Source of the DNA: Trichosphaerium sp. ATCC 40318
Lineage: Eukaryota; Protista; Tubulinea
Length of the DNA: 64,000 bases
Direction: 5' to 3'
Assembly: GCA_038496445.1 (NCBI GenBank)
Contig: JALMLS010000488.1
Location: 248,001-312,000 of the forward strand
Shown here: one piece after another, positions 1 to 43,948 of the stretch
Layout: every line of letters begins with the position of its first letter
Numbering within the stretch: the stretch's first letter is position 1
Made by a program: the position numbers and the translations under genes
The notes under the pieces: model-generated
Database searches by the model: none
What the model was told of the DNA's origin: nothing
What the model saw: only the letters and a program-made list of their open reading frames with translations

Positions 1-3000
1 ATTGAAAACTTTTTTTTTTCATATTGTTTCTGACTTCCTGTTTTAGCCCCTACAAGTATCAATAAAGGCGCTGGATTATGTGGAACTTATTCTTCTGAGA
101 TAAAGTTTGAACAAAAGAAGGCTATTGCTAGCTATCGCGCTACAGTATCCGTACGTAACATAGATTTTTTTAATTTCTTATTAAACATTGATCCTAATAA
201 AAGTCTTACATAGGTGTTTGCTTCTCAAGATGAGCACTTGAATCATAAAATTAGCAACGCAAAGGGAGTATATAGTGGTATGACACTTCGGAATGATAAG
301 GTACAATAGTATGATAGGGTGTCGTAAAGTCTTATTCTGTTTACTAGAAAGAAACAGGAAAGTTTGAAGCTGAAGTCACAAACGTTTCACCTAAAGTCCA
401 TGGATTCACGGTTGCCATTTTTTCAAAAGCTATGGTTGTAGCGTCTAAATTTAAGAAAGACAGATTATGGCACTTTGGTATTGCTGATATAATTCCTGTT
501 GTCTCACAGTACGCGTATATTTTCTCAGAACTTGTTTTACTTTTTTTTTTTGTGGTCAAAGTTTATTTCTTACACACGTGCTAGAAAAAATTCTTTGCCT
601 GCAAGATGTAACATTGGTTTACTGTGGGATGCATCTTTTAGCCAAGATAATTCTACGAACATTACGAAATATACAAATGTAATCAGAACTATTTTTTCAA
701 ATAGTTCTTTTCGTAGTTGCACAGTAGATGTTTATCTATTCCGAAATGAAATGGATACAACTGTTAGAACTTTCCAAGTATCTTCAGGATCATCTTCAAT
801 CATAACATACCTAAGAGACGTGTTCTATGATGGAGGTATGTTAAAACTCGATCATCAATTGTCAAGCTAACATTTTATGGATTTTTTAATTTTTTTTATT
901 GTTTTAACTGAACTGTTTTGTAGGTACCGATTTTGGCGCATTATCTGCTTTGCGTAGTAGAAAGGAAATGGGATCTCAGGGAACTGGTGATTATTCTTTT
1001 TACCTAATGTTTACGAACGGCATAAATTCTTTATCTAAAGAACCCTTAAAACGTGTTCAATGTCCTCTTCACATTATAAGTTGTGAGCCAAAAGCTGACT
1101 TTGATAATCTCAAAAAATGGGCAAAGCAAAGTGGCGGTTCATACACAAACTTACAAGTATGTCATTCTGTTCAAATAACAAGGTCATCTTTGTTTATTTC
1201 TTTTTAGAAGGAGAATCAATCTGCAATACCTGGAAAGCTTACAGCAGTGCCTCAGACTTCTTTTATGTATGCAGAGTACAATGAAAAGCATATTGATCCT
1301 AAAGAACTATGCCCAAAGTACGCAAACTATATTTTTTTTTTGAGTTTCGCAAGTGTGCTTCTTAACGGTTTTGTTAGTGTTGTAACTAAACTTGATAATT
1401 CTGGTGTGTTTATACTTGCAGGTAGAACTAAAACAACAACAGCTAAGAGCATAGATATTACACTAGGTACGGAAAAACGTGTTCCAAAACATAGTTACTA
1501 ACTCTGATTTTTTTGTAGTTTTTGGTACTGGTACAACAGTTACGTGCACTAGAAAGCATAAAGTAAATCTGACAGCGGAGCCAAATGCTACTTGTGATAA
1601 ACTTGTGGGAACGCTTTGGGCAAAGAAGAAGATAGATGCTCTTCAAGAGCTTGATGAAGCTGAACAAAAGGAGCACATTGAAACGTTTGCTTCTCTTGGT
1701 AGAGCATATGGAGTTATCTCAAAACATACATCGCTTATCGTGCTCGAAAACTTCGATCAGTATGTTAAGTATGACATTGAACCTCCAGAGGCGATGACAG
1801 GTACAACCATTCTCAAAAAACAAAACATCTTTTGCTTGTTGTTTTTTCTACAAATGTTTTTTTCTTTTATTAACTCTTGACTGTAGAGTGGCATGCAAGG
1901 TATATGGAAATTGCTAAGGAGAAAAAGAAGAAACAAAAAGGCATAGAGGAGCGTAAGATACAATATGTCCTTCAAATGTGGAACAGAAGGATAGGTACAC
2001 CAAAGAATTCCTCAATTCATTTTTTTCTTGTTTTTTTTTTGTATTTTTTTTCGACCTCTCTGACAATACATAGCTTGGTGGAACTCGGCGTATAGAGGTT
2101 CATATGGAACTACTCAATTCCTGGACTTTATTGATTACTACAAAGAATCTCTTGGTGACCCTGCAGCACAAAGTAGTGTTACTCTTAATGACTATGACTT
2201 TTCGAATACACAACAGATTTTCTCAATAAGCAAAACATCAACAACCGCAGAAACTAAAGCGCCAGGATTCGTTGATTTTGATTCATACCTTACTCTTGGT
2301 ACTTCTTGCTATTCTATAGAGGAAAAACCAGTCGTAGAGATTGTTGATTGGGCAAAGAATTTAAAATCAGATACCAACGGTATGTAATTATCTTATGTTC
2401 ATTTTAAGCTAACACTAAGTTATAGAAAGCCTCCGCGGGTACTTTTTTCAAGGAAACATGCGTACATATGCACCGCCTACTTCATTTGAGGAACAGAATG
2501 TGTATCAACAGCTAACGCTTACAAACGACCAGTATGGAACTTTACCAGGGCTTGATAGTTTAAAGTCTTATGATCAATCAATTAAAGAAATGGACGAAGA
2601 ATTGGTTGCATACATGCCGCCAAGACCTCCGCAGCAAGCACAAATGCAATCTTACTCCCAAAGGCCAATGGCGTACGCCCCACCGTCTCCAAGAATTAAT
2701 ACAAAAGATGGACTACTTTCTTACGGACAAATTCCAAATACAGGACTGAATAACTACAACAATTTGCCTCCAAAATTGCCTCCAGCAATGGGACCAGGAT
2801 ACATGCCACCACCTACAGGAGTGAGAGGATTGCCTGCACCACCTCCAGTATACATAGGAGGTGCACCTCCACCGCCTCCAGGAATGAGAGCACCAGGATA
2901 CGCAATGGGAGGTCCACCGCCACCGCCTCCAGGTTATGGATCACTGGGCAGAACGGCAGCACAGCATTCAGCATTTGGAGGACCTCCACCTCCACCTCCT

Positions 3001-6000
3001 CCAGCAGTGGGGGGACGACCTCCACCTCCTCCGGGCATGAGAGCACCACCGCCACCAGGGATGGGAGGACCTCCACCCCCACCACCTCCAGGAATGGCTG
3101 GACCACCTGCACCACCAACACCACAAAGAGCTACCGCATATGCTAGAAAACATCGAAAAAGAAGACAATCAAAACCCCAAGCTCTGCGCCGTACTGAAGT
3201 AGCAAAGCCTGTTAGTAGGTCCAGTCTACTCGGTTCGATTTCTTCGGGGAAGACACTTAAGAAAGTAGCGGTAGCTGAGAAAGCCAAACCTCAGGTAAGC
3301 ATCAGCACAATTTTGTACTTTTTTTTTTGGTGTTTTTCAAAGCTAGTTAAATTCTTTGTAGGCTTCAGAAGCATCAACATTGATGTTATCATTACTGAGT
3401 AGAAGAATGTCTGTTCTTGATGACTGTGACAACAGCAGTGATGATGATGACGATTGGGGCGAGTCGGAAAAGTCTGGAAAATTTGATTCAGCTGATTGGA
3501 GTATGCCTCTTGGCAAGATTACTCAAAGTACGTTAGGGCAATATTTCTTTTTTACATTATGTGGTATTAACTAATTAAATTAGGTATCACTCATAGTATT
3601 TCTTCGAAAAGGAGTGAGTAGTTTTAAGATGTTTACGAACTATAAATATTAACTGTGTTTTTTTAAAGGTCGAAAAATGCCATCAGCAAAAAAGGCTTCG
3701 CCTAGTATTCGCACTGGAAGTATAGGCGGACGTGCAGGTGGAGGTCGAGGTAGAGGTCGAGGTCGAGGAGGTCAAAGAGGACCAGGCCGAGGCGGAGGCG
3801 GTCGAAATGGAGGAGTTGGTAGTATAAACAGAAGGGTAAGTGTGCTTGAAAAATGTCTTTTTGATTTTTTGTTCACATTTGAGTAAGATATCGTCAACAA
3901 GAAAGGTGTCTGATAGACTAGGAAATTTAAGAGAGGGAAGAGAAAGAGTAAGTAGAGAAAGAGACAGAGACAGAGATAGACGAGACAGTAGCGATGGATT
4001 AAGACTTTTCCACAAGGAACGAGAACGTGAAATGGAAAAGATGCATGCTATGGAAGCAATGAAACGAGAACAGGAAATGCTAGAGAAAGAGCGATATGTT
4101 AAACAAGCAGAAGAGGAACGGCGGGTAAGAATGAAAGTGGAAGCAATGAAAGCCAAGGAAGAGGCAGAACACAAGAAACGTCATGCAGAAGAGATCATGA
4201 GAAAAAAAATGGAAATAGAGAGACGTATGCAAGAAGGAATGAAAATGAAGGTAGAACAAAAGGAAAGTCTCCGCTCGCGCTCTAGTTTATTTAAAAAGAA
4301 GAAGAAGGGTAAAGGAGGATATATCCCTATGACGCTTTCAAGGGCTAAACAAGAGAAAGCGAGAATAGCACCAACGAAAACAACGAAAAGACAAAGAAAA
4401 TTTTCTTTAGAGGAAGACAAAAAAGAAGAAAGAATACAGATCTACAAGGCTAGTATCTCTCAAAAAATACATGAAACAGAGAAAATTCGACATAGTAGGA
4501 ATATTGGCTACTTTGATGATAGTGATGATGATGAAGACGAATGCGAATCGTCTAGTTCGTCTAGTTCGTCTAGTTCGTCTAGTTTTTCAAGTACAGAATC
4601 ATCTATGTCGTCTTCTTCAGAATCTCGCAGTGGATCAAGCTGCTCTTCTATAAGTATAGAACAGGCAATTGCTGGTAACTATTTGGACATGTGCGTGTTG
4701 TGTCTTTTTTTTTTAATTTGTTTGGATTTGATTGTCTCTAACTGTTGGACTTTAGTGATGATATGCTTGTTGAAACAAACGAAAAGTTGAATTTACTTGT
4801 TAAGGAAGAGTAAGTTTCTTTTTTGGGTTTTTTCTTTCCCAGCTTTATTCTTATTGTTCTTTTAAGGGATACAAAGACTCACTGGAATGTCAAGTTTAAT
4901 AAAACACGTAATTCAAGCTCATGGGAAGAGATTAGTCGTACTGATCAGTCAATTGCTACAAAGAAAAGGGTACTCCAAATGCAATTGATCTCTAAGTACT
5001 TAACTGCATTAATGTAGGTGTATAAGTCTCTTAGATCCAAGTACCAGAAAGAGGCTGGTTTCTATATTGACGTTGCAACATCTGTTATGTCTAATGAATC
5101 ACATTATCAGTTTGCTGCTCAAGCTCTTTCTACTATTGCAGAGAAAGGCCTGGAAGATGCTCATGAGTTACGTATTATAGCAAGAATTCTTCTTGGGTTA
5201 AAGGCACGTTATTTTTTTGTTTTAAATGGGACTCTGTCTTATGTTTGGTAGGGTTATCTTGAGTATGCTATACGTGTGTACACAAAGATTTTATCTTTGA
5301 GACCTGAAGAACCCCAAAGTTACAGAGACCTTGCATTGGCGATAATGAAGCGAGTACGTATTTTTTTATAAAAAGACAGTTTTTGTTTCGTTTTTCTGAT
5401 GATTTGTAGCCTTCGAAGACAATTGATGACTATGAACAAGCTATGTCATTATTGAGTAAGATTTTGACAGGAGATTGGGATAAGAGATTTGCTCAAATCG
5501 AGTTGGTAGCATTAATGTACGAAGATATAATAATTTCTTTTTTTTTTCCTTATGTTTTTTATTCAGGGACGCGAATGCTATTATACAAGAAATACACTAC
5601 GAAAATCTTGTTGATAAAGTTCGTTTTGAGTGTGTTGATGCCCGTTTGATTAAACCTATGGATGTTGATATTCGTATTGTTTTACAATGGGTACGTTATT
5701 TATGTGGGAGCGTAAACTGTTCTGCTATTTTTTTCACTCATTTTTTTCTTAAAGCATCAAGATGATACTGATGTTGAACTTCACGTGACCGAACCTGATG
5801 GAACTGTTTGTAATGCTTTTAATAATAAGACTCAGAACGGAGGATTGCACTCAAGAGACTTTACAGGTACTTTACACAAGTGTAAAAAATACCTCAAACT
5901 CACTTCCGTTTTTTTTTTATTAGCTGGGTTTGGACCTGTTGAGTACCTTATTCATACCGCACAACCTGGTGACTATAAGATAAAAGCACGTGTGTTCCAT

Positions 6001-6153
6001 ACACAACACTCAAAATCTGCTACTGGAACACTTGTAACAATGACAGTTTACACAAACTTTGGTAGACCTAATGTTCAGATTTCAGAGCACTTTTCTAGAA
6101 TTTCTACTGTGAAAGATTTTATTGACATGGGTGTTGTTACATATAAACCTTAG
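1..6153 (+). CDS. Large multi-exon vWA/TPR/DUF2135 (YfaP-like) protein with an internal proline-rich WH2/VCA module and RGG, coiled-coil and Ser-rich segments; 5'-partial
   Basis: Exons join in frame. Motifs: IGLLWDASFS (MIDAS-like), VFYDGGTDF, HTSLIVLENFDQYVKYDIEPP, TPR-like ILSLRPEEPQSYRDLAL, and C-terminal DVDIRIVLQW-HQDDTDVELHVTEPDG...SRDFT-GFGPVEY typical of DUF2135. Stop TAG at 6151-6153. The start lies upstream of the window. Confidence 0.8.
4548..4583 (+). repeat. Coding 9-nt tandem repeat (TCGTCTAGT)x4 encoding poly-Ser
   Basis: Directly visible in the sequence. Confidence 0.8.
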
Positions 6154-6536
6154 TAATATAAACTACTTTTGTTTGTCGTATAATAATAAAGCAGAAAGTT
6201 TGGATAAAGAAGTATTCTTTTTTTTCTTCGCTAAAATGTTCTCACGTCGTTGTAAAATACCAGGTGGTATTTGTTGCTGTAGCTTTTAAGATTTATCAAT
6301 CAAACCGCCGATCGATAATGGTTCACTTAACTGTTTGAGAAAAAGAGCTATTACGCCGTCAGTTGTACTTTCAAGGCTATATTAACATTATGACGGCGTT
6401 CTAGTTTAAAGTGTCAACAATCACTAAACGCCAGGAACGCAGTTTTCAGAATTCAGAAACTTAACTTCTTTTTTGTATTACTTAGGTTCATATCTCAGTT
6501 ACAACCCCAAACAAACCCACAACTCTCACTAAAATA

Positions 6537-7107
6537 ATGACTTCTATCTGTGTTGAAGACGGCTGTGTTAAAGTTGAGTATGATGTACCAGCAAACCTCG
6601 ATGACAAGACAACATACTGTTGTAAAGTAAAGTTCACCAACAAGCTTCCAATTCCAATCACCGACTGCTTGGCTTATGTCGATGTTGATGAAGACTCTCC
6701 ATTCCACTCTGAGGTCATGACATGCGGTGGTTCTGGAGATCTCGATAAAGTTACCCTTGACTTTGGTCATATCCCTGCTGGAAAGTACGTTCTCAAAGCC
6801 TCACAAACAACCTTCAACATTGTTTCTTTTTTAATCAGTGAATAAATCTGGTCATTCAAGTCTGTTCTCAAATCAGCTCTTCTGATCCCACTCTACTCTA
6901 ATCTTTTTTGGGTATCTGCACTTTAATGTCAACTCACCGTTTTTTTTTAGAACCAAGAGCAGAGGATTCAAGTTCGCATTCCCAAAACTCGACAAGGACA
7001 TGCCAAAACAAAACTTCCATGGTATCTTCCAATTGGCTCCAAAGTTTGAAGTCGACTACTCCAAATGGGGTGGTGTTTCAAAGGAATCTGATGTCACTGC
7101 AAAGTAA
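6537..7107 (+). CDS. Two-exon ~134 aa hypothetical protein (beta-rich, possibly Ig-like); copy A
   Basis: Exon 1 6537-6785 (MTSICVEDG...HIPAG), GT-AG intron 6786-6950, exon 2 6951-7107 (TKSRGFKFAFPK...ESDVTAK*). Near-identical paralog at 28489-29060. Confidence 0.85.
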
Positions 7108-7733
7108 CAACTTAGAGTCGTATGTTATGATGTATCATCACAATAAAACCACAACTTCATCCATAAAAAAAGCCGTCAATTGACGTTGCATTCACCATTT
7201 GTTTATGTATCTTCTCGACTTTAGACATTCGTCTACATTTGATATAAACAGACTCTTGATAGTCAGTCCTATCTTTAGAAAATGTGCTGTAAAATAATAA
7301 TGAAGCCTGCTTTTTATGTTTTGTTTAAAAAATACATTTGTATTTAGTGTGCTAATGGCGGTACGTACCCTAATTCAAAGTGACTTTGACAAATTGTAAA
7401 GTTTGTGTAAAAACTGTGCCCCTGCTGCAAAAAAAGCAGTTTAGTAACATTCAAATTGTCGTCATTCATACAAGGAGTAGCTTTAATGCTGGAAGCAGCT
7501 TCCAAGTTTCGGCAATAGGGTATTGAAACCGGACTTGGCTACGCTTCGTTTGCCAATAAAGGCACGCGTGCACTAATCTCGCGTAAAACCACTTGTACAA
7601 TAAATAGCCATTCAAAAGTCGAAACTATTAAAGCCGTTTCTGCACAACTAGCAAAACTACTATTCTTGTATACAACAGACACTATATCTAACGCATGCAA
7701 ATTTTATTGTATGTAAGCAAATATGGCATAAGC

Positions 7734-9085: not shown

Positions 9086-9335
9086 TAACACCAATTCCGT
9101 ATTTGCTCCAAAACACTCGTCCTAATTTGGACAAACAAAAAACCTTAAAATCTTACCTTCAAACGCGAGTCACAACTCCTCTCTTTTGATACTTTTAATA
9201 AGGTACAAACACTTTTACATTGCACTTAGTTCCTGTGCGCTAAGGCAATTAGTAAACCCATTTTTTATCCTTGACTTCTTTTTTAGGCTTAACTGGTACA
9301 CTCAAGTCGTTTTTAACTTTTTCCTCACATCAAAC

Positions 9336-10748
9336 ATGCAATACTCTGGCGCAGAGTATTATTTATCGGGGCTCACTGCACTACCAATAGAAACAATAGT
9401 TCATATCTTGAAATGCGGGACCTTTACTTTACGTTCAGCACAAACATGCCATCTTATGCATGATATCGTACATAACCACGTTGGATACAAAGAAATATGT
9501 GTCTCAAACGAAAATCAATTGCCGATACTTTCTGGGAGCCCGTTACTTCAGAACACACGCATATCACTCGCTGGTATTTGTAGTACTGCCAACGATAGCC
9601 ATTTGGACTTACTTGCAGGAGTACACACTATAGACTTGAGCGGCTGTTTAGGAGTAACGCACAAAGGCATCAGTGCATTGATAGGTGTCCACGAGATTGA
9701 TTTATCTCGAACAAATGTGAGAGACTCAAGTTTAAAGGCATTATCTGGCGTACATACTATCAACTTGAGTCGTTGTAATCAAATAACGAGTGAAGGTATC
9801 AAATCATTGGCAGGTGTGCACACTCTTTACTTGACAAGTTGCGAATGCCCTTTAATAGACGAAGGCATCAAAGCACTGTCAGGTGTACACACTATCGACT
9901 TGTGGTGTACTAAAATAACAGATGAAGGCTTAAAACCTTTGGCTGGTGTGCAAGCAATATACTTGTCCAGATGTTACTCGATTACAGATGAGGGTGTACA
10001 AGCATTGGCTGGCGTACAAGAAATTGATCTGTCACACACAAAAGTGACAGACGCAGGGCTAAAGGCGCTGGCAGGAGTTCAAAATGCTGGTTTGGTGGAT
10101 TGCAAAAACATTTCTGATGAAGGTATCAAAGCCTTAGCTGGCGTACACCAAATCAACCTCAGCGGATGTGTAAACGTACATGACGAAGGTATCAAAGCTT
10201 TATCTGGTGTACACACAATCAGTTTGGAGCATTGTAGACAAATAACAGACGAGGGTATCATGGCGTTAGCCGGTGTACATGAAATTAATTTATCTTACAC
10301 CAACATACGCAATGAAGGCCTCAAAGCATTGTCAGGTGTACACACAATCTACTTGAGCAAGTGTGGAGACATATCAGACCTCGGTATAATGGCATTGGGT
10401 GGTGTACATACGATCAATTTATCGTTCACATCTGTGAGCGATTATGGCATTAAAGCGTTGTCTGGTGTACACAATATCACCTTGACATGTTGCAGTAGAA
10501 TAACAGATGAAGGCATCAAGGCGTTGGCTGGCGTACATGACATCAGAGTCGCGTTCACAAAGGTGAGCGATTCAGGTATTAAAGCGTTGTCAAGTGTACA
10601 CACGATCGATGTACAAGGTTGTTCTGGAGTAACAGATGAAGGTATTAAAGCTTTGGTGTGTTTACGTCATATTCATCACAATATGAATACTGGTCTCAGT
10701 GAAGAATACATAAAGATCCTACGCAAGCGCGGTGTACGTGTATCTTAA
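9336..10748 (+). CDS. Intronless F-box-like/leucine-rich repeat protein (470 aa); copy A
   Basis: N-terminal LTALPIETIVHIL (F-box-like), then ~17 repeats of 21-22 aa (LAGVHTINLSxC/T..ITDEGIKA). ATG at 9336 gives the same length as the paralog at 26670-28082. Confidence 0.9.
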   Translation: MQYSGAEYYLSGLTALPIETIVHILKCGTFTLRSAQTCHLMHDIVHNHVGYKEICVSNENQLPILSGSPLLQNTRISLAGICSTANDSHLDLLAGVHTIDLSGCLGVTHKGISALIGVHEIDLSRTNVRDSSLKALSGVHTINLSRCNQITSEGIKSLAGVHTLYLTSCECPLIDEGIKALSGVHTIDLWCTKITDEGLKPLAGVQAIYLSRCYSITDEGVQALAGVQEIDLSHTKVTDAGLKALAGVQNAGLVDCKNISDEGIKALAGVHQINLSGCVNVHDEGIKALSGVHTISLEHCRQITDEGIMALAGVHEINLSYTNIRNEGLKALSGVHTIYLSKCGDISDLGIMALGGVHTINLSFTSVSDYGIKALSGVHNITLTCCSRITDEGIKALAGVHDIRVAFTKVSDSGIKALSSVHTIDVQGCSGVTDEGIKALVCLRHIHHNMNTGLSEEYIKILRKRGVRVS

Positions 10749-10965
10749 ATAAAAATCGAATTATTTACAACATCAAATTACCTTTTTGTGGAGGAGTTTA
10801 AGCTCTTTTGTCTGTACACATGATATCCTAAAAAATTGTTGAGTTATTGAAACAGTACAGTAAGTCTAGAGAGAAGCCAAACTATGACTGAAAAACCTTG
10901 TTAAGTCTCCCTACAGGTATTAATAATAACTTGGCTTAAATGGTTTCAAATAATTGTTAAATTCA

Positions 10966-42466: not shown

Positions 42467-42733
42467 TTCTTGGTGAAATGTAATTTTGAGTGCGATACCA
42501 ATAAAGGAAATGTTGCGCTGTGTAAACAAAGTATTTAGTCTATCCTTTGCAAGGGCGATTAGTTGGTTGCTGAAAAATATATGTTGTAATAGTATTGACA
42601 TTGTCACGTTTTTTTTACAAGTCAAGTGCAGTCACACTGGTAATTAAAACAAATACTGTGCTTCTACATCTAAATTGTTGTATATCTCTATCATTACCCT
42701 TATTAAAGCAGTCTTCAACAAATATAATCAAGA

Positions 42734-43948
42734 ATGAACTCAAACAGCTCATTCTTTGACGAGATTCCGGTTGAAGTCATTATTTATATTCTACGGTTTG
42801 TTTCTGTGTTATCTATGCATACAGTAGTACGTACATCAAAATTATTAGCCAATATTGCTGTACAACACTTGAAGTACAACAATGGCAGTAGAACTATAGT
42901 TTTAAAAAGAAAACAGCTTAAAAAGCTATACAAGACAGCTCCATATCTCATAAAGAAACATACAATTTCCCCACTCTTTAAAATCAAACAAAAAGACTTA
43001 AAGTACCTGAACGGTGCTTATGCACTTAAACTCAGGGAATTGAAACTAACAGTTGATTTTACAGAATTTACTGTAGTTGATTGTATTGACTTCACACCAT
43101 GTTATCACGTGAGAGATAATCATCTCAAACAACTTGCAGGAATACATAAAATTCTATTACGTGGGTCTAGTATAACAGATGCAGGTGTGAAAGCATTGGC
43201 TGGTGTTCATACTATTAAATTGAGCGAATGTTCAGATATTACAGATGATGGTATTACAGCTTTAGCTGGCGTTCATACAATTAATCTTTACAAAACACGT
43301 GTCACAGACGATGGTATTAAAGCATTAGCATTTGCTGGTAGTATTCATTCTATTGATATTAGTTGTTGTAAAAATATAACAGATGATGGTGTTATGGCGC
43401 TAGCACAAACAGGTGTTCATACCATTTCTTTAAATTGTTGTGATATTACAGATGAAAGTATCAAAGCATTAGCTGCATCTGGAGTTCATACTATTAGTCT
43501 ATGGTACACAAAAGTCACAGATGAGGGTGTTAAAGCATTAGGAGCATCTGGTGTGTACAGTATTGAGTTAGGGCATTGTGTCCTAGTTACAGATGAAGGT
43601 GTTAAAGCATTAGCTGGTGTTCATACCATTAACTTAGAGGGATGTAAAGTTACAGATGACGGTATTAAAGCGTTAGCTGGTGTTCATTCGATTATCTTAG
43701 ATGGAAATACTGAAATAACAGATAATGGTGTTAAACATTTAGCTGGTGTTTATGACATATCACTAAGAGGATGCCATCAACTAACAGACAATGGAATAAA
43801 AGCATTGATTGGTGTACATGTAATCAATTTAAAGTCATGTCACAATGTTACAAAAAGTGCCGTAGAAGCTTTAGGTGATGCTAAAATTGACTTAAATATA
43901 GTAGAAGTTAGAACATACAGTGAAAAATTGACTGGAATTTTTAAATAA
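42734..43948 (+). CDS. Intronless F-box/LRR protein; third, more diverged family member
   Basis: FDEIPVEVIIYILRF F-box motif; LAGVHTIxL..ITDDGIKA repeats. Confidence 0.9.
   Translation: MNSNSSFFDEIPVEVIIYILRFVSVLSMHTVVRTSKLLANIAVQHLKYNNGSRTIVLKRKQLKKLYKTAPYLIKKHTISPLFKIKQKDLKYLNGAYALKLRELKLTVDFTEFTVVDCIDFTPCYHVRDNHLKQLAGIHKILLRGSSITDAGVKALAGVHTIKLSECSDITDDGITALAGVHTINLYKTRVTDDGIKALAFAGSIHSIDISCCKNITDDGVMALAQTGVHTISLNCCDITDESIKALAASGVHTISLWYTKVTDEGVKALGASGVYSIELGHCVLVTDEGVKALAGVHTINLEGCKVTDDGIKALAGVHSIILDGNTEITDNGVKHLAGVYDISLRGCHQLTDNGIKALIGVHVINLKSCHNVTKSAVEALGDAKIDLNIVEVRTYSEKLTGIFK

Follow-up and report, generated by a model that had tools for sequence, protein, structure and literature searches.

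In the WASP family, exemplified by N-WASP and WAVE1/Scar, a proline-rich domain (PRD) precedes a WH2 motif (LLxxI...LKKV), a central helix that terminates with RR-x-x-hydrophobic and a tryptophan-containing acidic run, whereby the WH2, central and acidic elements constitute the VCA module. VCA-like modules equally work outside of this family, in Listeria ActA, Rickettsia RickA and baculovirus p78/83, and are not necessarily situated at the extreme C-terminus. In amoebozoa, WAWH and WAML have been described as additional WASP-family members with a lineage-specific VCA beyond WASP, WAVE and WASH (Kollmar et al., 2012, PMC3298513). Here, we describe a gene of the amoeba Trichosphaerium sp. ATCC 40318 located in a 64,000-nucleotide stretch of DNA (contig JALMLS010000488.1 of assembly GCA_038496445.1, positions 248,001 to 312,000; this whole stretch is referred to as the window and coordinates are positions within it), which encodes a WASP-type module at 2766-3469 on the + strand in the order polyproline, basic patch, WH2, central helix and acidic stretch with tryptophan, placed in the interior of a protein with the VIT-vWA-TPR-DUF2135 architecture.

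The order and spacing of the elements correspond to the VCA region of N-WASP and WAVE1/Scar. Unlike in the WASP family, however, the module is internal, is not accompanied by WH1, GBD, SHD or WAHD and is flanked by an ITIH-like VIT-vWA head and a TPR-DUF2135 tail. While ActA, RickA and p78/83 are pathogen mimics, the window gene is a host gene conserved across amoebae. WAWH and WAML, in turn, differ from the window protein in that they retain N-termini of the GBD or WAID type and have the VCA at the C-terminus; a protein with VIT or von Willebrand domains is not mentioned in the census of the WASP family (Kollmar et al., 2012, PMC3298513). Because its VCA is not C-terminal and a family N-terminal domain is missing, the window protein is not filed as a WASP-family member, although its module is, in form, a WASP-family VCA.

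The scaffold has described relatives of its own. The AlphaFold2 model of residues 1-620 of P0155, a homolog from Rhizamoeba saxonica, has a pLDDT of 88.8 and matches ITIH1 (6fpy) over about 600 columns (E 3.5e-28), followed by vWA-containing proteins, and this head fold is shared with Dictyostelium Vwa1 and human VWA5A. As Vwa1 (PMC10539598), the eukaryotic family proteins are predicted to be intracellular with a long disordered loop before the C-terminal domain, whereas Vwa1 and VWA5A end in another C-terminal domain and do not possess TPR-DUF2135 (Boland et al., 2023, PMC10539598). Autoinhibition across the long disordered loop has been proposed for Dictyostelium Vwa1, in a study in which WH2 and actin are unmentioned (Boland et al., 2023, PMC10539598). 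Bacterial VIT/VIT_2/DUF2135 proteins of about 1,000 amino acids have the same head and tail with a short disordered linker at the same position. In contrast to the eukaryotic members, however, these bacterial proteins are exported by means of a signal peptide and their linker of about 70-90 residues does not contain a VCA. A search of the literature for DUF2135, for the VIT domain together with WH2 and for a nucleation-promoting factor (NPF) with a von Willebrand domain found no publication.

The module itself is distributed over two exons. The large linker exon (2426-3294), according to its translation, starts with a Q/Y/P-rich sequence and continues with the proline-rich region upstream of the VCA, which consists of several GPPPPPP(P)G tracts at about 2766-3125, with the basic patch and with the WH2 motif SRSSLLGSISSGKTLKKV, located within 3208-3276 and recognized by Pfam WH2 (PF02205) with 23.7 bits at a cut-off of 23.1. 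A phase-0 GT..AG intron (3295-3361) separates WH2 from the C-A exon (3362-3527), which encodes the central amphipathic helix STLMLSLLSRRMSVL with its RR (3374-3418), the acidic stretch DDCDNSSDDDDDWGE (3419-3469; tryptophan codon 3455-3457) and subsequently a second Asp-Trp (SADW). The first-pass annotation of this DNA, made from the sequence alone, had proposed a PRD-WH2-central-acidic module at 2780-3470 interrupted by this very intron; all the elements are indeed present on the + strand, and the intron is supported by its GT..AG borders, by frame logic and by a profile that stays in register across the junction. The basic patch ARKHRKRRQSKPQALRR, at about 3139-3200 directly before WH2, has a basic counterpart in the Rhizamoeba homolog and could be a lipid-binding or nuclear-targeting patch.

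When compared by phmmer with 177,635 PDB sequences, the 38-residue WH2 piece matches only the WH2 chains of Spire, N-WASP and WIP. A profile built from the modules of six homologs with exclusion of the window sequence scores 38.1 bits on the spliced window protein (residues 836-905), reaching across the 3294|3362 junction. Among the 2,077 open segments in the six frames of the window, the same profile scores on two adjacent exons only, with 21.0 and 16.4 bits, the latter for the C-A exon alone on profile positions 43-83, while the next-best segment reaches 5.5 bits. In the alignment, the central helix segment LMLSLLSRRMSV corresponds to the C regions in the profile of the homologs, which for their part align with those of N-WASP and WAVE1.

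The homologs were retrieved by phmmer with exon 1521-1799, which identified P0019, a protein of 1,784 residues with the same scaffold encoded by one intronless open reading frame (ORF) on metagenome contigs with a GC content of about 54%, so that the whole architecture is contained in a single ORF. Region searches added P0151-P0154, P0155 and P0156 (Echinamoeba exundans) and further P0158 (Cavostelium apophysatum), P0273 (Arcella intermedia) and P0385; the eukaryotic members counted here are a lower bound, as the P0154 region search gave at least 11 proteins. The window protein itself was not found in the protein collections searched, with 48% as the best identity. The first-pass annotation had suggested to look for the same architecture elsewhere, and it does recur: Rhizamoeba saxonica P0155 and five metagenomic relatives (P0019 and P0151-P0154) carry polyproline, WH2, L..L..RR..I/V and an acidic run ending in tryptophan, all in the middle of the linker and in order and place as in the window protein.

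In profile A1, built from the modules of these six homologs, S-S-L-S-I-G-L is invariant in WH2, as are L-RR and W in the C-A part. Compared with the PDB, this profile matches only chains of the WASP family, WIP and Spire, among them N-WASP (6uhc_H) with E 2.9e-9 over V, C and A, WAVE1 (3p8c_D and 4n78_D) with about E 2e-6 up to the final tryptophan, and equally N-WASP CA chimeras and the WASL CA peptides 9dlz and 9dlx. The linker of the P0019 group is otherwise only 10-20% identical, with conservation peaks at polyproline (0.35-0.49) and WH2 (0.57) and smaller rises at C and A. These profile matches over V, C and A together with the conservation peak inside a diverging linker indicate at the sequence level that the module is real, homologous in form to a full WASP-family VCA and under selection.

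A further phmmer match of exon 1521-1799, the metagenomic P0003 (L004 4380-4618), combines an EF-hand-like stretch with a WH2 that strongly resembles that of WASP (GLLNQIRAGHSLHKV) and with a C helix, behind which a stop is followed by an acidic run located at the end of the contig; a frameshift or an intron is a possible source of this stop, in a region of low coverage. An RGG box after the VCA, considered as a family-wide feature, was rejected, being confined to the window protein, P0019 and P0273.

The protein is a member of the VIT-vWA-TPR-DUF2135 family and can be divided into three parts, namely a VIT-vWA head that resembles ITIH1 and is predicted to be cytosolic, a seemingly disordered linker of about 800 residues and a TPR-DUF2135 tail. 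The folded body after VIT is encoded on the + strand in one open frame by ten exons of the gene model (47-150, 214-300, 348-508, 585-835, 924-1156, 1208-1317, 1378-1466, 1519-1800, 1887-1994 and 2074-2379), which comprise a vWA domain with the metal-site motif DxSxS (WDASFS), a hybrid-type beta region and a long helix; the later conserved LLFSDG of the vWA domain is, as identified by eye, LMFTNG in the window protein. The window head is 33% identical to P0155 250-606 and to P0019 192-539. The tail begins with a pre-TPR segment and TPR-like repeats with the EEPQSYRDLALA motif (4756-4809, 4867-4969, 5018-5203, 5252-5353, 5410-5516 and 5567-5690) and ends with the DUF2135 beta-sandwich (5755-5866 and 5924-6153, stop codon 6151-6153), for which Pfam DUF2135 (PF09906) gives 22.3 bits at 5926-6150 with a cut-off of 22 and a spliced RNA contig extends to 6198. 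The Pfam scan recommended by the first-pass annotation recovers WH2 and DUF2135 above their cut-offs in the window and VIT in the homologs P0154-P0156, P0158, P0273 and P0385, with 66-77 bits. Pfam vWA models give only weak matches on the window, and in single exons vWA and TPR went undetected by Pfam because these domains are divergent and split by introns.

That the scaffold is of bacterial type, as had been proposed, is supported: the nearest large Atlas clusters all consist of bacterial VIT-DUF2135 proteins, and the window protein is 26-35% identical to bacterial P0160 in head and tail, with the C-terminal 280 residues, from the pre-TPR/TPR-like region onwards, being 35% identical to P0160 724-1012. 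The full-length model of P0160 (pLDDT 87, pTM 0.86) is disordered only in the linker 623-692, besides part of the N-terminal signal-peptide region (13-28). In this model, the head matches ITIH1 (Z 23.2), residues 271-430 match many vWA domains (Z 14-16, root-mean-square deviation 2.5-3) and residues 706-879 match the TPR protein Ctr9 (Z 14.3), which, for a helical repeat, constitutes moderate evidence.

While bacterial members possess signal peptides, full-length eukaryotic members start at VIT and have neither a signal peptide nor a hydrophobic segment. The eukaryotic family proteins should consequently be cytosolic, where the VCA can meet actin; for the window protein, whose N-terminus is encoded upstream of the window, this statement rests on the full-length homologs. 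In a tree based on the last 400 residues, the eukaryotic proteins with a long linker, the window protein among them, form one clade (100/99) separate from the bacterial proteins. Proteins of the bdelloid rotifer Rotaria (P0274-P0276, P0278 and P0345) with a ZZ finger, VIT and DUF2135 nest among bacteria apart from the amoebozoan clade, which suggests a separate transfer.

Except for its first exons, an expressed eukaryotic gene of amoebozoan type with at least 23 exons lies completely within the window. On the + strand, a single open frame of 23 exons and 1,593 residues leads without a stop from upstream of 47 to 6153, whereby the introns in the window are short (46-88 nucleotides) with GT..AG borders and, in one case, GC..AG. 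About 130 or more N-terminal residues with the VIT domain are encoded upstream, as residue 117 of the model aligns to residue 250 of P0155. Between the module and the tail lie an in-frame micro-exon of 30 nucleotides (3584-3613), flanked by phase 1 on both sides, the RGG-box exon (3669-3835), identified by translation, with the RGG run at residue 951 and an RNA-supported junction to the C-A exon, and exon 3888-4690 with RD/RE repeats, a charged helical, coiled-coil-like stretch, a lysine run and an acidic/poly-serine stretch.

Expression is documented by public spliced RNA contigs of three sets, X1, X2 and X3, and the statements made here cover the matches listed; the X2 and X3 contigs are 90-99% alike to the window and may derive from a close relative. 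Record 1 of X1 (1,659 nucleotides) covers 4096-6198 with all eight predicted introns spliced out, including the junction from 4690 to 4756, and introns among 4756-5690 are partly removed in X2 as well. The GC..AG intron (5204-5251) is spliced out in two independent contigs. In X2, contigs without the introns 1318-1377, 1467-1518, 1801-1886 and 1995-2073 are found. RNA contigs also lie on the linker exon (2425-2571 and 2534-2707). Record 11 of X3 (151 nucleotides) connects 3447-3527 of the C-A exon via 3584-3613 to 3669-3706 of the RGG exon, so that the VCA exon is spliced in frame to downstream exons. In accordance with the first-pass annotation, the module is thus internal in a frame that continues to the RGG, coiled-coil, TPR-like and DUF2135 regions, as supported by this RNA junction, the 4096-6198 contig and the intronless homologs; in the path from the VCA to the RGG exon, the continuity was correctly predicted and the micro-exon was overlooked. 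The frame is kept also if the micro-exon, which is seen in one RNA contig, is skipped.

Considering these features, we hold with moderate confidence that the module would work as VCAs do. The proline tracts would recruit profilin-actin or SH3 partners, WH2 would hold an actin monomer and the C-A part would dock on the Arp2/3 complex, so that Arp2/3 would be brought in, and probably activated, at whichever site engages the folded body of the protein. This body, with the vWA metal site and TPR/DUF2135, would serve as the targeting or regulatory input and perhaps hold the linker closed as long as no ligand is bound. That the protein binds actin and Arp2/3, that it activates the complex and that the body exerts control over this are hereby predictions, while the anatomy of the gene, its expression, the single frame, the conservation and the missing signal peptide of full-length eukaryotic homologs are observations. 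Within the explanation that we consider best, the module is a short motif that is selected and, somewhat more probably than not in our estimate, working.

Several observations, nevertheless, weigh against an Arp2/3 activator of this kind. Concerning the gene model, the junctions 3294|3362 and 3835|3888 are unbridged among the RNA contig matches listed, with the former placed by the reading frame and the register with intronless homologs and the latter deduced from the frame only. In addition, the sole RNA contig over the A6 run at 4419-4424, the X1 contig, has seven A's, and an extra A near 4418, if real, would end the frame near 4451 and yield a protein without the TPR-DUF2135 tail. Together with a stop codon at 3572-3574 that is reached by read-through into the intron after 3527, these observations could be taken to mean that the VCA exons belong to a shorter transcript, ending for example by retention of the intron after 3527 or at the A-run close to 4418, without ever being connected to TPR-DUF2135. 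Such an artefact of the gene model is very unlikely, though, as record 11 of X3 joins the C-A exon through the micro-exon to the RGG exon, one frame is open through 23 exons and the homologs are colinear in single ORFs. The additional A, situated in a homopolymer in a small data set from 2015, is more likely a homopolymer error and is taken as such, given that in the genome the frame remains open and leads on to conserved exons downstream.

Concerning the motif, the C-A exon alone shows no significant match to the PDB by phmmer, merely a chance lipase. As the Pfam score for WH2 is barely above the cut-off and the linker is rich in low-complexity sequence, the module might be viewed as a relic or a look-alike, that is non-working proline-rich and acidic low-complexity sequence with a chance WH2-like peptide. 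This interpretation is unlikely, if slightly less so than a faulty gene model, in the light of profile matches that span the full V-C-A and are unique among the six frames of the window, of the L, RR and W that are invariant across lineages and of the conservation peak at the module.

Concerning the architecture, the VCA is internal, at about 690 residues from the C-terminus, and Pfam detects no WASP-family N-terminal domain (WH1, SHD, WAHD1, WMD and others) in the window exons, with the first exons of the gene lying upstream of the window, or in the full-length homologs. Equally, the VCA-bearers do not constitute one clade within the eukaryotic group of the C-terminal tree, a group with weak support and long branches, and this tree does not resolve a single versus a repeated gain of the VCA.

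A further objection is provided by the linker itself, as other family members, in a small sample, hold different pieces of cell proteins at the position of the VCA. The linker of Arcella P0273 contains a complete ubiquitin domain (residues 1515-1585, 82 bits), that of Cavostelium P0158 an IBB, a V-SNARE_C-like motif and ubiquitin (residues 719-771, 918-958 and 1382-1424), that of P0156 a SNARE-like heptad stretch (about residues 1065-1100) and that of P0385, at residues 773-836, actin residues 5-63 including the D-loop region (44 bits). With this variable cargo in the linker, the VCA may be one of many handles or baits and not a dedicated NPF output. The idea put forward by the first-pass annotation of an NPF on a bacterial-type scaffold therefore stands with respect to the WASP-like module and the type of scaffold, while its simple form is weakened by the other cargo.

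Variable host-derived cargo at one site of a conserved chassis resembles the display of baits or decoys, an analogy and not a sequence family, and, given the cargo variation, a general display or bait role is as natural a reading as an NPF. The eukaryotic VIT-vWA-TPR-DUF2135 chassis would then use its expanded linker to show pieces or mimics of cytosolic machinery, and the VCA would be there for recognition, either by Arp2/3 in the role of a monitored client or by a pathogen factor directed against tails of the WASP type, with the folded head and tail reporting or trapping the recognition event and the building of actin networks not being the purpose. The exchange of ubiquitin, IBB and SNARE, actin fragment and SNARE-like heptads between members and a linker that, in the P0160 model, is a disordered stretch between two confidently modelled halves are in line with such a role. 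On the other hand, a VCA is, unlike a broken fold, a self-sufficient binding motif that would bind Arp2/3 and actin anyway, and cleavage, trapping or signalling are hypothetical activities of the scaffold. No pathogen factor is known to target VCA tails as such. We consider this display role as possible but tentative.

Put forward even more cautiously, the long-linker amoebozoan VIT-vWA-TPR-DUF2135 proteins might as a whole represent an undescribed cytosolic display system, in which an ITIH-like chassis of bacterial type presents, in an expanded loop, interchangeable handles or baits from the core machinery such as the WASP tail, the actin D-loop region, ubiquitin, IBB and a SNARE motif. The VCA member would hereby watch or tap the Arp2/3 pathway and might, for instance, act against intracellular pathogens in the manner of a guard or decoy.

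The sequence adjacent to the gene is partly duplicated. About 140 nucleotides past the stop codon begins an inverted segmental duplication with 90-93% identity (6291-7171 and 9279-10757 versus 29302-28424 and 28144-26661), which comprises a small cysteine-rich ORF as well as an LRR_6 gene of the RNI type; at 42728-43945, there is a third LRR_6 gene.

Returning to the recruitment of Arp2/3 as the preferred explanation, an active module would make the protein a new class of Arp2/3 regulator and a natural case of an internal VCA, with a metal-dependent vWA/ITIH-like body as the input instead of a GTPase- or lipid-sensing WASP domain. The window gene adds to the evidence that amoebae place VCA modules on many scaffolds. 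It also leads to the wider question of why a cytosolic chassis of bacterial type carries such varied pieces of the core machinery in one expanded loop.

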